From Selaginella moellendorffii (taxonomy: Eukaryota; Plantae; Lycopodiophyta): a stretch of 64,000 nucleotides of DNA. A program made the position numbers and the translations under genes. The notes below the pieces were generated by a model. That model ran no database searches, was not told the DNA's origin, and saw nothing but the letters and a program-made list of their open reading frames with translations. The stretch is taken from NCBI RefSeq assembly GCF_000143415.4, contig NW_003314266.1, positions 2,553,399 to 2,617,398 of the forward strand, written 5' to 3'. Position 1 is the first letter of the stretch, and the number at the start of each line of letters is the position of its first letter. Of the stretch, positions 28,151 to 63,967 are shown piece by piece.

Positions 28151-29118
28151 TATGATTTTGAGCGTTTCTTCTCGCTGGCTAGAGAGTCGCGGGCGCGTCC
28201 TCGCCAGTTCTTTGCTTCTCCATGCCTGTATGGTGTCGCCTTCTTGCCACTCGTTGAACCCATCGACAACATTCCAAAACCTGGAACTTGAATTGGACGT
28301 AGCGAGCAGAGATAAACGTAGATACCTCTTTGGCTACATCTTTTACCCGTCGAAGCGAGCTCAAGCTCCCAGTGTGCACGCTTTTCTTCCCTCGCTTGTA
28401 GCCTTTGGTCAGCTTTCCTTCCGTCACCATGCATAACGCCACTCGTCCACTTCCACTCGTGAAAACCGCTCGAACCTCCAATTTCCAATTGGATTTTCCT
28501 CCTGGAGACAAGTTTGAGTGACGGGAGGATGGAAATGCAAAGAACCATGTACCTGGATGGGCTTCAAGAGACCCTCCTCATGTCATCTACCAGTTCCTAC
28601 ATGACTTTGTAACGCATCTTAACGCCTTTGCTGCCCCTCACCGTCGGCTGCGTGCGTTACGTTGACGATTCCTCCACGAACGCAAACTTCCTAGACAAAC
28701 GCGTTATGAGAGGAACTGTAGAAAAGTCTTTAAAAACAAGAGCCTTACTTTGGCACCGACAGCACCTAAAGCAAGAGCTATGGCTTTGCCAACGCACCTG
28801 TAACCAGACTGAAATGCGAATAGTATTTCCTGAGTTGCCTATACTAGACTGAGAAAGCCCCCTGGTACATGAATCTTCAAGTTTAAAGGAGGGATAAAAA
28901 AACGCTCTATGATAAGATATTCTATTACTCGAGGAAACCGCTACTTAGCTTTTCGTGATGAGCTCGACTAAACATGGCGAATTTCTCCGTCTCAGTTTTG
29001 GTGGAAAACTTCCAATATCCTCAACGAACCACTTTGATATCCTGTAGATGACACAGTGAGATCAAGGAAAATGTAGAAACCGAGAGAGTACCTCTAAAGA
29101 TAGAAAAGGATGCGCTGC

Positions 29119-30592
29119 TCAACTGTTCAAGTAAGGGTGTAATGACGGTGGCCTGAAACGTCTGGACAATCCCACTACTCTTCGCTGTGATAGAGTGGTC
29201 GAGGATTGTACTGGAGGCAGGAGCTCGTCTGTAGAAAAGAAAGAGAGTGTTGTGCAACAATCAACGAGCGACATGCCTTACCCGGAGTTGCAGAGGAACA
29301 TTCAGGCTTCTTCACTGTCACATTCCAGGGAGGCGCTGATCAAAGATAAGAAAAAAGAAGAGCTTACCTTTTGCGGTTTCGCCTACTCCAAAAGAAGCAC
29401 TTACATCTTCTCCTTCATTCATTCTCCGCTTTTTAATTCTCTTCGGAGAAGCGTGTCTGCTAGCATTCGTGCCGTTCCCTTGCTCTTCCTTTTCGCCCTT
29501 TCCAATCAAACAGACACTTCCTTAAAGCAAAGAAGTAAAGCGCAAAAACTTACTCTACGTTTGGTGCTGTCTGGCATATCTTCTACCTGGGCTCCAGTCG
29601 CCAGCAAGGACAGAATTTATAAACGAGAAGAAAAATAGATAAAACTTACGTACTTCTTGATGCGTCGCTCGATCTTCTTCGTGAACCATATCCTCTTCCA
29701 TAGTTGGCTGCAGAGAAACTCTAAAAAATTGTGCAAGAAATAGAAAAATCGAGTGGCACCTCTTGCACTTTCGCAAGATCATCTACATCAGCCGGCTGCA
29801 AACGAAGAATCAAAAGTAAACGCATAAAAGGGAAAAAGCGCGAAGAGAGGCACCTGTGGCTGTTTCGTGAGATTTCCTGCACCACTTGGCTACAAGCAAG
29901 AAACCACATAATTGTCACGGTCAAGGAGCAAAAGAATAGAAAAGGCGAAAGAGTAGTACCTCGTACTGTTTCGAGCGGTCTCCTGCATCAGCTGCCTGGA
30001 AACGAGCATTCTAAATGAGAAGGAAACAAAATCAGCGAAGAAAGAATACCTCGCCAGATTCTTGTAGCTCAAAAGCTCTTGAGCGACCTTCTTCGTAAGT
30101 AACATCGAGCAAGCACTGGAACGCAATGGATGGATTTGTGGGCGACGAAGAAACAAAACTGGCCGTCGAGATCTCTGAGGCCACCGCTACATCATTGAGT
30201 GACTCTCTGATGGCCCTCTCAAGCTGCATTGCCTCTGCCCGTTCCTGGAAAAAAAAAAATCTGCGGGTAAATCTCCTCTCTCCAACGCAAAAGGAAAAAC
30301 AAGAGAAAAAGCAAACCCAAACGAAGCAGAGTGTGGGTGAGTACCTTTGGATTTGGCCTCGCCTGGAACAAAGGAATGAGCGCCACAGCTCCAAAATCTC
30401 TCTCGCACAGACTCATACCTTCTTCTTCTTGTGTGCTGCTGCTGCTGCTGCTGCTGCCGAGCTTCTGCTCTCACGCTCCGGCCGCCGCCTTGCGCTGGTT
30501 CTCACGGGCAGCGCCGAGAAATCTTCATCGTCGTCGTCAGAGACGCTCTCGGCGTAGGAAATCCTGGATCGCGCTTGCCGCTGCGGCCTCAT
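29119..30592 (-). CDS. 11-exon gene encoding a ~284-aa disordered nuclear protein, RAD51AP1/NUCKS-like
   Basis: Exons 30592-30419, 30362-30345, 30244-30050, 29995-29960, 29889-29854, 29795-29760, 29707-29654, 29586-29554, 29497-29368, 29314-29282, 29228-29119; all GT-AG and in frame. N-terminus MRPQRQARSRISYAESVSDDDDEDF; UIM-like QLERAIRESL; NLS PKRIKKRR; C-terminus RRVVGLSRRFRPPSLHPYLNS. Confidence 0.75.
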
Positions 30593-30884
30593 CGTGGAAA
30601 TCTCCTAAACCCTAGAATCTCGTTCTCTTAAAGGTGCCATAAACCCTAAACGTGCAAAGTTATGAAAAGAAGTTTGGAAAGGTAATAGAAACATATGGTT
30701 TACTAACCTGATACTAGTTAATTTAGACTAATAACTAATTACAAAACAAATTACAGTGTTCTTGTGATTTATGTTAGGCTAAAGGTAAAATTTATAGCTG
30801 TCCAACTATTAAAATTACAAAACTACTACACTGTTAATGCAAAATTTGGTCCTCCACAACACAAAACCATTGTCGCCTAACTCA

Positions 30885-37636: not shown

Positions 37637-40600
37637 ATGGCGGAGGCCTCTGGGCTTGGGCCGTGCGAGCTGGGCGGCGACTTCACCTTCGAGCGCAAGC
37701 ACGGTGGCCAGCGATCCTGGACGGACGACGATGGTCTCGGCGGCTCGGCGTTTGGTGATGGCCACCACCGCGATCGAGGCGACGACGATCTTCTCTGGGC
37801 CGCCCTGGAGAAGCTCCCAACTTATCGCCGGCTTCGCACGACTCTCCTGGAAGAACTCGAGGCTGGAGATCAAGATCAAGGTATGTTGCTTTAGATCTTA
37901 CTCTCTCGAGACGATCCAATAGAGCTTAAACTTTTCTCCAGGATCGACCAAGCACGTCATGGACGTGAGCAGCTTGACCCGGATGGAGAGGCAGAGGATC
38001 ATCGAGAGAGCCTTCGCCACCACGGACCAAGACAACGAAACGCTGGTGGCGAGGCTGCGAGAGAGAATCCAGGCGGTGGGAGTGCAAATCCCGCGAGTGG
38101 AGGTCCGCTTCCAGAACCTCCGCGTCTCCGCCGACGCCTACGTCGGATCCAGAGCCCTCCCAACGCTCGTTAACTTCGTGAGGAACATCACCGAGGGCCT
38201 CCTAGCAGCGTCCGGGGTCCTGGCCTCGAAAAAACGCGAGATCCACATCCTGAAAGACGTGAGCGGGGTGGTGAAGCCGGGAAGGACGATGCTGCTGCTG
38301 GGGCCTCCCGGATCCGGCAAGTCGACGCTCCTGCGAGCTCTTGCCGGGAAGCTGGATCAAAGCCTCAAGACCACCGGAGCCGTCACTTACAATGGCCACA
38401 CCTTGGACGAGTTCGAAGCTCGGAGAACTTCCTCGTACATTAGCCAGGAGGACGATCACATCGGCGAGCTTACGGTCCGCGAGACGCTCGACTTTGCTGC
38501 TCGCTGCCAGGGAGTTGGATTCACGATAGATCTACTGATGGAGCTGCTGCGGCGGGAGAAGCGCGAGAACATCCGGCCGGATCCATGCATCGACGCGTTC
38601 ATGAAGCTGGCGGCGGTGGAGGGCGCGCGGCACAGCGTCCGGACGAACTACGTGATGAAAGTCCTGGGCCTGGAGATCTGCGCGGACACGGTGGTGGGGA
38701 GCGACATGCTGCGCGGCGTCTCGGGCGGGCAGAAGAAGCGCGTCACCACCGGGGAGATGATCGTCGGGCCCAAGAAGACGCTCTTCATGGACGAGATCTC
38801 CACGGGGCTGGACAGCTCCACCACCTTTCAGATCGTCAGGTGCGTCCGCAACTTCGCGCACTCGCTCGAGGGGACGGTGCTCATGGCGCTGCTTCAGCCA
38901 CCTCCGGAAACATTCGAGCTCTTCGACGACGTCCTGCTCCTCGCCGAGGGTCACATCGTCTACCTCGGCCCCCGCGAGCACATCCTCGACTTCTTCGCGA
39001 GCTTGGGCTTCCAGCTCCCGCCCCGCAAGGCCATCGCGGACTTCCTCCAGGAGGTGACGTCCCGGAAGGATCAGCAGCAGTACTGGGCGGACGAGACACG
39101 GCCTTACAGCTACGTCCCGGTCGCCACCATCGCCAGGGCATTCAAAGGCTACGAAGTTGGCAAAGACCTCGGACTCCACCTCGGGTCCCCGTTCGAGAAG
39201 GAGTCCGGCCACCCCGCCGCGCTCACGACGACCAAGTATGGAATCCCGCGCTGGGAGATGTTCAAGGCGTGCACCGAGCGCGAGTGGCTTCTCATCAAGC
39301 GCAACCGGTTCCTCTACACTTTCCGGACTGCGCAGGTCGCGTTCATGGCGTTCGTGGCCGGGACCTTGTTCTTGCGGACGAGGATCCATCCGGACAGTGA
39401 GAGCGATGGAAATCTCTACCTCGCCACGCTCTTCTACGCGCTGGTCCACATGATGTTCAATGGTTTCTCGGAGATGGCGATCACGGTTCATCGGCTGCCA
39501 GTGTTCTACAAGCAGCGGGACAACCTCTTCTTTCCCGGCTGGGCGTTTTCGCTCCCAAGCTGGCTGCTCCGGATACCATACTCGGTGATCGAGGGAGTGA
39601 TATGGTCGTGTATTGTCTACTACACGGTCGGATTGGATCCACAGCCGCAGAGGTTCTTCCGGTATATGTTCTTGCTGGTTCTCATGCACCAGATGGCTCT
39701 CGCGATGTTTCGCTTCATCGGTGCCGTGGGGAGGAACATGATCGTCGCCAACACGTTTGGATCATTTGGGATTCTTATTGTTTTCCTCCTCGGGGGCTTC
39801 GTGATCGATAGAACTCACATACCAGGGTGGTGGATCTGGGCTTATTGGCTCTCGCCGCTCTCGTACGCCGAGAACGCGCTGGCCGTGAACGAGTTTGGAG
39901 CTTCGCGGTGGGATAAGTCCGTGCATGGTGACGACGGAAAGCTCTACGTGAAGATCTTGAAGCCGAGGGGCCTCTTTGTGGAGAGTTACTGGTATTGGAT
40001 CGGGATTGCGGTGCTGGTCGGGTATATAGTTTTGCTCCAGCTGCTGGGAACGCTCGCTCTCTCGTATCTCAATCCTCTCCGGAAGCCTCAGGCCGTGGTC
40101 TCGGAGGAAAGTTTGCGAGAGATGGCGGACAATGACGCGGAAGTTCGTGAGAGTCCAGTAGCGATCGAGGTTTTGCCAGTATCGAATGGAGGAGGAGGAG
40201 TGACGAAAGGGATGATCCTGCCGTTCCAGCCGCTGGCACTAACTTTCCAGAAGGTTTGCTACTTCGTGGACGTTCCGGCCGAGATGAGAGCCCAGGGAGT
40301 GACCGAGGACAGGCTCCAGCTTCTCCGGGACGTGAGCGGAGCTTTCAGGCCGGGGGTTCTTACAGCGCTCGTCGGCGTGAGTGGAGCCGGCAAGACGACT
40401 CTCATGGACGTTCTTGCGGGAAGGAAAACCGGGGGATACATCCAGGGCGACGTGAGGGTCTCCGGGTTTCCAAAGCTCCAGAAAACTTTCGCGAGGATCT
40501 CCGGCTACGTGGAACAAACGGACATACATTCCCCACAGGTGACCGTCTACGAATCGCTCGTTTACTCCGCGTGGCTGCGACTCCCGGCCGAGGTGGACGC

Positions 40601-42050
40601 CGCCACCCGCTATTCGTTCGTGGAGAAAGTCATGGAGCTGGTTGAGCTTGGCAACTTGAGAAACGCCCTCCTGGGACTTCCAGGGACGTCGGGGCTGTCC
40701 ACCGAGCAACGCAAGAGGCTGACCATCGCCGTGGAGCTCGTTGCCAACCCCTCGATTATCTTCTTGGACGAGCCAACGTCGGGTCTGGACGCTCGAGCAG
40801 CTGCGATCGTGATGAGAACCGTGAGAAACACGGTGGACACCGGAAGAACAGTGGTTTGCACCATCCACCAGCCGAGCATCGATATCTTCGAGTCGTTCGA
40901 CGAGCTCCTGCTGATGACTCGCGGGGGCCGAGCCATCTACGTCGGCCCGCTGGGACTCCACTCCAAAACCATGATCGACTACTTCCAGTCTATTCCAGGA
41001 GTTCCTCCGCTGCGAGAAGGCTACAATCCAGCGACCTGGATGCTCGAAGTCACGAGCCCCTCGGCGGAGCTCCGGCTAGGCCAAGCCTTCGCGGACATCT
41101 TCCAGAACTCCATGCAGTACCAAAACAACGAGAAGTTGATCGAGTCACTGAGCTCTCCAGCTCCAGGATCCAAGGATCTCGAGTTCCCGACCAAGTACTC
41201 CCTGGACTTTTGGAGCCAGTGCCGGGCTTGCCTGTGGAAGCAGCACTTGACGTACTGGAGGAACCCATACTACAACGTTGTCCGGCTCTTCTTCACGCTC
41301 GTCTGCGCGCTCATCTTCGGCTCAATCTTCTGGGGCGTGGGGAGGCACCGTGAGACGCAGCAGGACGTTTTCAACGCCATGGGAGTCTTGTTCGCGGCGG
41401 TGGTGTTCCTGGGAGTAAACAACGCGTCCAGCGTCCAGCCGGTGGTGTCCGTGGAGAGGACCGTGTTCTACAGGGAGAGGGCAGCGGGGATGTACTCGCC
41501 GCTGCCTTACGCATTCGCGCAGGGGGCGATCGAGCTCCCATACATCTTCGTCCAGACGCTCCTCTACGGCGTGGTCACGTACGGCATGGTCCAGTTTGAG
41601 CTCTTGCTCGTCAAGTTCCTGTGGTATCTCTTCTTCATGTTCGTCACCTTGGCGTACTTCACGTTATACGGGATGATGGCAGTGGGGCTTACACCATCAC
41701 AGCAGCTGGCCTCGGTGGTTTCCTCGGCCTTCTACTCGCTCTGGAACTTGTTCTCTGGGTTCTTCATACCCAAGAGGAGGATCCCCGGGTGGTGGCTGTG
41801 GTTTTACTACTTGAACCCGGTCAGCTGGACGATCTATGGGCTGACGGTGTCGCAGCTCGGGGATGTGGAGGACGAGATTGGAGTTGGAGATGGATTGGAA
41901 ACGATGAGCGTCAAGGAGTTTCTGGAGCGATACTTCGGGTTTGAGGAGGGATTTGTGGGAGTTTGCGCGATGGTGATTTTGGGGTTTATGCTGCTCTTCT
42001 GGCTCGTCTTTGCGTTCTCCATCAAATTCATCAACTTCCAGAGGCGATAG
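37637..42050 (+). CDS. ABCG31: Full-size ABCG/PDR transporter (ABCG31-like), single 61-nt intron
   Basis: WAALEKLPT; intron 37881-37941; [12 protein letters not shown]; VSGGQKKR; [12 protein letters not shown]; GVSGAGKTT; GLSTEQRKR; [12 protein letters not shown]; NFQRR end. The subfamily assignment is from recalled similarity. Confidence 0.93.
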
Positions 42051-63103: not shown

Positions 63104-63967
63104 TTATGGTGCATTCCATATACATCTTTTTGTAACATTATCACAAAGGATTATGTAACCATCATTGATTACACAAAGTGCCATTATTTTCCATTTATTT
63201 TTCCAATATATGTTAATTGACCACATCACAATATTTTTATTATCATATATTACAAGGTTTCCATCTGTTTGTAATCTTAAAAAACAGCCTTTTCCTTTAT
63301 CATCTGTTTTAGTTTTCCAAATAATAGTTTTTCCTTTAAAAAGTAAAAGCACACAATTCAATTGCATATATAATGAGTATTGTCTATTTGGTGATATAAG
63401 AATTTGTCCAGCATATAAGTTAGAAAATGATGAAAAGTTATCTATACTTCTAATACAAGTTTGTCTCCACGTACAATCAGTTTTAGCTGTATTTATAAAT
63501 ATAAATGCATTTTCTAAATATATAGAATCTTCACTTTCTTCAATCTTATATAAAATACTAAAGCTTTCAAATATGTATTCAGAAATTGGAAAATTTAAAA
63601 TACCATAATCATTTTCTATATATCTAGTGTATATATATTCAAATATTTTTTTTGGATAAGAACCATAATAGGGATTTGAATATTGAGGGAATATACTACA
63701 AAGTGATTCATAATATGGTGGTGTAACAAAAGTACGCAAAGGGGTTAACACAATTTTAATTTCATGATGCACAAAGATAATTGAATTTCCAGGAATATAT
63801 GGAGATAAAGTATTAATTGATTCTATTGCAGCTCTTATAGTTCTTAAAATTAAAACTTTTGTTACTTCTAAAATACGGTGATTTCCTTCTCTGTTGATTG
63901 TTATTGCAAAAAGAATTTGGGGAAGAGATATTAAGACCATAGCTAAAAATAATGTTTTTCTAAACAT
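63104..63967 (-). CDS. Intronless AT-rich secreted protein with a C-terminal bulb-type (GNA) mannose-binding lectin domain
   Basis: 287-aa ORF; signal peptide; NLYAGQILIS..YSLYMQ.NC.L..IWKT; QTDGNLVIY (QxDxNxVxY). Confidence 0.75.
   Translation of the reverse strand: MFRKTLFLAMVLISLPQILFAITINREGNHRILEVTKVLILRTIRAAIESINTLSPYIPGNSIIFVHHEIKIVLTPLRTFVTPPYYESLCSIFPQYSNPYYGSYPKKIFEYIYTRYIENDYGILNFPISEYIFESFSILYKIEESEDSIYLENAFIFINTAKTDCTWRQTCIRSIDNFSSFSNLYAGQILISPNRQYSLYMQLNCVLLLFKGKTIIWKTKTDDKGKGCFLRLQTDGNLVIYDNKNIVMWSINIYWKNKWKIMALCVINDGYIILCDNVTKRCIWNAP

Follow-up and report, generated by a model that had tools for sequence, protein, structure and literature searches.

Does the genome of a seed-free plant encode a counterpart of RAD51AP1? 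Recent reviews call this protein vertebrate-specific (PMC12535699), RAD51AP2 and NUCKS1 are described in the same way (PMC1636435, PMC4787752), and the literature that we searched yielded neither a plant counterpart of RAD51AP1 nor any hit for peptides of the human protein used as text. The question is raised by a gene on the minus strand, at positions 29119-30592, of a 64,000-nucleotide stretch of Selaginella moellendorffii DNA (contig NW_003314266.1, positions 2,553,399 to 2,617,398; hereafter the window), which a first-pass annotation had described as a hidden gene for a candidate RAD51AP1 homologue. The gene is not hidden, because RefSeq already carries exactly the same 284-amino-acid model: the product is letter-for-letter XP_024525627.1 (P0001), "uncharacterized protein LOC9660457 isoform X1", and the second-haplotype copy is LOC9659340. 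What RefSeq leaves unnamed is the function. Judged from its sequence, the LOC9660457 protein is largely disordered and of nuclear type, and it is fairly probable that it is a distant RAD51AP1-family member of seed-free vascular plants that would dock on RAD51/DMC1 via its invariant C-terminus, and a RAD51AP1-type helper probably also exists in these plants. The splicing and expression of the gene, the conservation pattern of its product and a sequence-level match to the RAD51-interaction motif are established here.

Word-indexed protein searches returned homologues from Psilotum nudum (P0005, 387 residues) and Adiantum capillus-veneris (KAI5076023.1, P0010, 445 residues), together with three near-identical transcriptome proteins of fern type (P0011-P0013). 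Among the four lineages (Selaginella, Psilotum, Adiantum and the P0011 type), pairwise identity is about 20% over the bulk of the protein, 40% in the N-terminal 25 residues, 59% in AFQCL(L/V)D, 82% in the block NAKERAEAxQL(E/Q)RAIxESL, which resembles a ubiquitin-interacting motif (UIM), and 87% in the C-terminal block T..RRV(V/I)GLSRRFRPP.LHPYL. The AlphaFold model is disordered, with a mean predicted local distance difference test score (pLDDT) of 49; the exceptions are a helix at residues 63-86 (pLDDT 74-81) and a moderately confident C-terminus. Given these conserved islands and the disordered model, the protein amounts to a series of short constrained motifs strung along an otherwise disordered chain. 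With exon 3 as the query, an exhaustive HMMER search retrieved the Selaginella protein as its one true match; three repeat proteins from the same search (P0002-P0004) were judged spurious.

The genes of Selaginella and Adiantum differ greatly in extent, with 11 coding exons packed in 1.5 kb in the former and ten exons spread over 41.7 kb (CM043949.1), including one intron of about 39 kb, in the latter. The second exon of Adiantum (ERENAK) nevertheless also measures 18 nucleotides and has the position and phase of Selaginella exon 2, and the last intron is in phase 1 in both genes, ten residues before an invariant Thr in Adiantum and eleven in Selaginella. These shared features, the 18-nucleotide exon and the phase-1 last intron, support orthology. 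No seed-plant, bryophyte or algal members were found in word-indexed, length-limited searches, and the lack of seed-plant and bryophyte matches is weak evidence, since the last of these searches missed the Selaginella protein itself. Scans of metagenome contigs with the UIM-like block and with GLSRRFRPP returned no relatives.

The resemblance to RAD51AP1 is centered on the C-terminus. In the human protein, the substitutions R316A, L319Q, L328A and H329A weaken RAD51 binding, and L319Q abolishes it (Kovalenko et al. 2006; PMC1636435); in the numbering of a 2025 cryo-electron microscopy (cryo-EM) study the four residues are R333, L336, L345 and H346 (PMC12704761). In the cryo-EM structure, Site-M (332-LRLGLSR-338) occupies a hydrophobic pocket of RAD51 and Site-C (L345/H346) a shallow groove; the RAD51 residues D50, F92, R95, I100, T119, Q145 and D184 line the human binding site (PMC12704761). 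By translation and alignment, the plant motif, RVVGLSRRFRPPSLHP, consists of G-L-S-R, six residues, and then L-H-P. Its counterpart of Site-M, V-(V/I)-G-L-S-R, thus has a hydrophobic residue ahead of G-L-S-R and is invariant in all plant lineages; its counterpart of Site-C, L278-H279-P280, is likewise present and invariant, its distance from the C-terminal end being 4 residues in Selaginella and 7 in ferns. A spacing identical to that of human RAD51AP1 had been claimed, and it holds: Leu and His are 10 residues apart in the plant (L269 to H279) as in human (L336 to H346), in a motif located at the extreme end of a protein that is expressed. V or I occupies the position of human L334 and Val that of R333; of the five named anchors, four are either identical or conservatively substituted. 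In all plant sequences the linker between GLSR and LHP reads R-F-R-P-P-(S/P), an F-x-P-P with basic flanks, which fits the definition of the P-motif through which BRCA2, FIGNL1 and RAD51AP1 Site-N bind RAD51 and DMC1 (PMC11229353).

Among 24,736 Pfam models, PF15696 (RAD51_interact) is the only family matched in all lineages; the matches always lie at the extreme C-terminus and end 2-5 residues before the stop codon. The curated cut-off of 25 bits is passed by the C-terminal 48 residues of the Psilotum protein (25.4 bits, E-value 1.6e-5, profile positions 10-39; 20.9 bits at full length). The C-terminal pieces of P0011 and of the Adiantum protein reach 19.2 and 18.5 bits (16.3 and 15.8 at full length). 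The Selaginella protein scores 15.1 bits with its last exon (E-value 0.027, profile positions 24-39 of 39) and 14.7 with its last 40 residues, and its full length is unmatched. A PF15696 match had been put forward as a check on the homology; at the curated cut-off the outcome is mixed, with only the Psilotum piece above it. Another point on which the first-pass annotation made its proposal depend, conservation of the C-terminal motif in plant homologues, is borne out by invariance from lycophyte to ferns.

The similarity seems to extend beyond the motif. When P0011 was compared with 7.7 million protein clusters by language-model neighbourhood, in which scores below 0.9 are leads only, the top three clusters were chordate RAD51AP1 (0.86, 174 of 256 features). 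After removal of residues 331-387, the remaining residues 1-330 still had chordate RAD51AP1 as the nearest neighbour (0.86, 175 features), and the placement of P0011 near RAD51AP1 is therefore independent of the C-terminal motif. For the Selaginella protein, chordate RAD51AP1 clusters rank second and third at 0.77. The nearest neighbours also include a cluster of 171 'hypothetical proteins', mostly from arthropods and of about 255 residues, which ranks first for the Selaginella protein and may be an invertebrate branch of the family that has gone unrecognised.

The Selaginella gene runs from an ATG at 30592 to a stop codon at 29119-29121, with 11 coding exons in frame on the minus strand, AG acceptors and GT donors throughout, and an in-frame stop 5 codons upstream of the ATG. 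The exon boundaries were first chosen by hand at AG/GT sites. The exons and the parts of the encoded protein are as follows.

30419-30592, minus strand: exon 1, coding, 58 residues; ATG at 30592, with RNA contigs reaching at least 30622
30518-30592, minus strand: N-terminal block MRPQRQARSRISYAESVSDDDDEDF in exon 1, followed by runs of Ala and Lys
30345-30362, minus strand: exon 2, 18-nucleotide micro-exon (ARPNPK); joint 30243/30344 in four RNA runs
30050-30244, minus strand: exon 3, 65 residues; RNA joints
30197-30244, minus strand: predicted UIM-like helix ERAEAMQLERAIRESL in exon 3
30104-30124, minus strand: conserved AFQCLLD in exon 3
29960-29995, minus strand: exon 4, 36-nucleotide micro-exon, first of three apparent tandem duplicates; RNA joints
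29854-29889, minus strand: exon 5, 36-nucleotide micro-exon, apparent duplicate unit; RNA joints
29760-29795, minus strand: exon 6, 36-nucleotide micro-exon, apparent duplicate unit; RNA joints
29654-29707, minus strand: exon 7, 18 residues, acidic; joint 29583/29651, cut +3, compatible only with the GTACGT donor at 29653
29554-29586, minus strand: exon 8, 11 residues; RNA joints
29368-29497, minus strand: exon 9, 43 residues plus 1 nucleotide, with the basic patch SPKRIKKRR; RNA joints
29282-29314, minus strand: exon 10, 33 nucleotides, (V)KKPECSSATP(D); joint 29314/29368 in four runs
29119-29228, minus strand: exon 11, coding part, 35 residues and the stop codon at 29119-29121; the 3' untranslated region (UTR) continues to 29091; RNA
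29128-29196, minus strand: C-terminal RAD51-interaction-like motif TLSQRRVVGLSRRFRPPSLHPYL, residues 260-282; from translation, PF15696 and conservation
28797-29040, minus strand: 3' UTR exon; joint 29040/29091 in four runs, contig pieces 28797-29040

RNA contigs from four runs, each of a different study, were aligned to 28700-30800, and these runs contain about 40% of the words sampled from the genomic stretch. The contig joints excise introns 2-5 (30245-30344, 29996-30049, 29890-29959 and 29796-29853) and introns 6-10 (29708-29759, 29587-29653, 29498-29553, 29315-29367 and 29229-29281) exactly, as well as a 50-nucleotide intron in the 3' UTR (29041-29090), which begins 28 nucleotides past the stop codon and is removed in all four runs. 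Since they skip these introns, the contigs derive from spliced RNA. They also settle two boundaries, the start of exon 10 at 29314 rather than at the upstream AG at 29335, and the end of exon 7 at 29654, with donor GTACGT. The joints rule out a version with exon 10 starting from 29335, which would add APPWNVT and give 291 residues, and another (model B) with exon 7 ending at 29650 and exon 8 starting at 29582. The eleven in-frame exons and the protein of about 284 residues proposed at the outset thus stand, with introns 2-10 and the frame of the last exon matched by contigs from four studies; the spliced product is 284 residues long and identical to the RefSeq protein, and the peptides that had been quoted from it, MRPQRQARSRISYAESVSDDDDEDF, QLERAIRESL, KKPEC and VVGLSRRFRPPSLHP, are all present in the translation.

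The weakest joint is that of intron 1 (30363-30418), whose removal shows only as a 10-nucleotide loose end in one run, besides the RefSeq model. A minor joint, 30234/30390 (GC..AG, minus strand), occurs in two runs. RefSeq also lists an isoform X2 (P0009, 267 residues; the other haplotype has the same form, P0008), which has a frameshifted tail, GKTSSCLQYNPRPLYHSEE, and lacks the RAD51-like motif. By our reading of the sequence, this tail would arise from a GC donor 5 nucleotides downstream of the canonical one (29282-29286 / 29229-29281). At the exon 10/11 boundary the four RNA runs show the canonical joint only, and not the X2 donor.

Beyond the C-terminus, the first-pass annotation had matched three further segments to RAD51AP1. 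The plant N-terminal block (R-P-x-R-Q...S-Y...acidic...F) appears to resemble the N-terminal region common to human RAD51AP1 and NUCKS1, and QLERAIRESL may be the counterpart of the human LEVALALS. Within the plant family, the alignment shows both the N-terminal and the QLERAI.ESL blocks to be conserved. Pfam found nothing recurrent on the plant N-termini; a Shugoshin_C match on the Selaginella N-terminus (E-value 0.089) was dropped because it was not recovered in any fern N-terminus. UIM_2 matches the Selaginella protein at 12.9-13.6 bits (E-value 0.08-0.13), under its curated cut-off of 21, and Pfam left the fern blocks unmatched. Hence, the UIM-like reading of the predicted 63-86 helix, which we draw from that helix and from a consensus core recognised by eye, is a suggestion.

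The third segment fares differently. In human RAD51AP1, Site-N, KKPKWVPP, is a DMC1-binding motif upstream of the RAD51 site, with K300, K303, W304, P306 and P307 as its named residues (PMC11229353, PMC12704761). The Selaginella segment KVKKPECSSATP contains no aromatic-x-P-P, and KKPEC is not kept in ferns; since it lacks the W/F-x-P-P that defines the DMC1 site and is unconserved, Site-N is absent and the likeness of KKPEC to KKPKW falls. Of the four proposed motif matches, the C-terminal one is supported, and the N-terminal and UIM-like blocks are conserved within the plant family.

Between these blocks, exons 4-6 (29760-29995) are each 36 nucleotides long and in phase 0, and share 22-24 of 36 nucleotides pairwise, where chance would give 9.3 on average (P < ~1e-3). 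The pattern suggests that a 12-codon micro-exon was duplicated in tandem along with its short intron, and the family alignment shows no counterpart of this repeat in ferns. The basic patch SPKRIKKRR of exon 9 is a candidate nuclear-localisation or DNA-binding patch.

How might such a protein act? By analogy with human RAD51AP1, the last ~20 residues would dock on RAD51, and probably on DMC1, in the filament. V-G-L-S-R would fill the hydrophobic pocket occupied in human by Site-M (LRLGLSR), and L-H-P the shallow groove occupied by Site-C (L345/H346). DNA would be held by basic patches in other parts of the protein, which would stabilise the filament and help displacement loops (D-loops) to form, and the UIM-like helix, being conserved, may recognise ubiquitin where chromatin is damaged. 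Binding to RAD51, DNA and ubiquitin, and a role in repair or meiosis, are what we infer from this analogy.

Several observations weigh against placing the protein in the RAD51AP1 family. The resemblance is a linear motif of 16 residues, a type that convergence can produce, and within it Val stands opposite R333 (R316), a RAD51-contact residue of the human protein. There is no W-V-P-P DMC1 site, and the sole FxPP is the F-R-P-P within the C-terminal motif. The Selaginella score for PF15696 is below the cut-off (15.1 versus 25 bits), as are those of three of the four lineages in all, and the full-length query is unmatched. The window was chosen from a scan of ~250,000 windows, in which chance alone should yield a 15-bit match to any one model (p ~1e-6) a few times; the case therefore rests on the conservation in the fern homologues and on the body-level similarity. 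The language-model scores may partly reflect a shared disordered, charged composition. Searches of the PDB with single sequences and profiles of the C-terminus and the whole family returned no RAD51AP1 chain, only acidic-tract noise. Finally, contigs that retain intron 1 occur in four of four runs, at about half the depth of the adjacent exon contigs, and retention would end the frame after 59 residues.

The alternative that best survives these data, although we consider it unlikely, is convergence on a short linear motif: a disordered nuclear protein with no relation to RAD51AP1 would have evolved a RAD51AP1/RAD51AP2-like peptide independently in seed-free vascular plants, making the two analogous and not homologous. 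Only ~16 residues match a curated model, the RAD51-binding motifs FxxA and FxPP recur in unrelated proteins (PMC11229353), and searches of limited sensitivity found no bridging lineage among bryophytes, seed plants, algae or fungi. A peptide acquired on its own does not explain why the body of P0011 without the motif is still nearest to RAD51AP1. Nor does it explain the parallels in overall layout, namely the length, the disorder, the extreme C-terminal position of the motif, and the apparent sequence of elements, in which a basic-Tyr-acidic-Phe block at the N-terminus is followed by a UIM-like helix and then by acidic and basic patches.

It is quite unlikely that the resemblance is due to chance, with a C-terminal block that binds a different partner, perhaps in a ubiquitin- or chromatin-linked pathway, and a protein that has nothing to do with RAD51. 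The sub-threshold PF15696 scores in three lineages would fit this explanation, as would the UIM-like block, which is as conserved as the C-terminus, the KKPEC likeness, which itself proved to be chance, and the post hoc choice of the candidate from a very large scan. Chance sits poorly with PF15696 as the sole recurrent match among all the models searched, always C-terminal, with a best homologue (Psilotum) that passes the cut-off over profile positions 10-39, and with all structurally defined anchor residues at exact spacing.

Very improbable is a mainly meiotic protein that stands closer to RAD51AP2, or to the ancestor of AP1 and AP2 before they divided, and shares the RAD51-binding module only: the plant tail L-H-P-Y-L recalls RAD51AP2, in which Tyr-Leu-Lys is common to the orthologues and absent from RAD51AP1, and in which a stop replacing Y1146, two residues past H1144, significantly lowers RAD51 binding, though far less than point mutants do (PMC1636435), but RAD51AP2 has 1159 residues against 284-445 in the plants, the plant bodies resemble RAD51AP1 clusters, and the Selaginella transcript occurs in runs of several unrelated studies, which would argue against strictly meiotic expression.

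We return to membership in the RAD51AP1 family as the preferred reading, and extend it tentatively. It is possible, although we would not yet count on it, that the family predates the plant-animal split, survives in lycophytes and ferns, and was lost or became unrecognisable in seed plants, and that the plant module is a compact composite of VGLSR, FxPP and LHP within 16 invariant residues that could engage the groove between the N-terminal domain (NTD) and ATPase domain as well as the P-site of RAD51 and DMC1. If the assignment to the family is true, the origin of this recombinase cofactor predates the split of plants and animals, research on plant recombination and meiosis gains a new, directly testable RAD51/DMC1 partner, and the question arises why seed plants appear to lack a RAD51AP1-like cofactor. 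The invariant 16-residue peptide would then be a natural experiment on the essential contacts of RAD51AP1, with G-L-S-R and L-H-P kept and the linker replaced by FxPP.

The neighbouring genes fit a plant genome: they encode a lipoxygenase, a PDR-type ABCG transporter, a DUF604 protein, a neutral ceramidase and protein kinases. An Rfam scan of the window gave no match. The ABCG transporter (37959-42050, plus strand; 1363 residues; ABC_tran, ABC2_membrane, PDR_assoc) is encoded by one uninterrupted open reading frame (ORF) with a G+C content of 58-60%, against ~45% in the surrounding region, whereas its neighbours are full of short introns; this intron-free, GC-rich ORF may be a retro-copy or a recent acquisition. 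At 63104-63967 on the minus strand, a 287-residue ORF lies in AT-rich DNA (32% G+C), and has a C-terminal match to B_lectin (D-mannose-binding lectin) at 28.5 bits, below the cut-off of 32.4.

Among known systems, UIM proteins share with the plant family a predicted helical segment, ERAEAxQL(E/Q)RAIxESL, that fits the core hydrophobic-x-x-Ala-hydrophobic-x-x-Ser, and differ in that the UIM_2 match is sub-threshold in Selaginella and not recovered in ferns. NUCKS1, a paralogue of RAD51AP1, is a chromatin protein that is likewise charged and disordered; it has the N-terminal region of RAD51AP1 without the C-terminal RAD51-binding domain (PMC4787752), whereas the plant proteins carry a C-terminal RAD51-binding-like motif. 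The basic-flanked plant F-R-P-P fits the definition of the FxPP P-motifs (BRCA2 PhePP, TR2; FIGNL1; RAD51AP1 Site-N), although it is embedded in GLSR...LHP and is not a separate site. RAD51AP2 has the C-terminal motif of PF15696 and a tail, L-H-x-Y-L-K, close to the plant L-H-P-Y-L, but this long protein is meiosis-specific and has nothing else in common with RAD51AP1-like proteins (PMC1636435).

RAD51AP1 (PIR51) itself differs from the plant family in its Site-N W-V-P-P and in R333, both of which the plants lack, in the invariant F-R-P-P that the plants carry between GLSR and LHP, and in distribution, the plant family occurring in a lycophyte and ferns and RAD51AP1 being called vertebrate-specific in the reviews cited above. 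Like the plant proteins (284-445 residues) it is small (335-352 residues), and it is largely disordered, as reported for the human protein (PMC12704761). It bears its RAD51-binding peptide, G-L-S-R plus six residues plus L-H-P (PF15696), at the extreme C-terminus, and its anchors L336, L345, H346 and P347 are kept at identical spacing in the plants, with L334 replaced by V or I.

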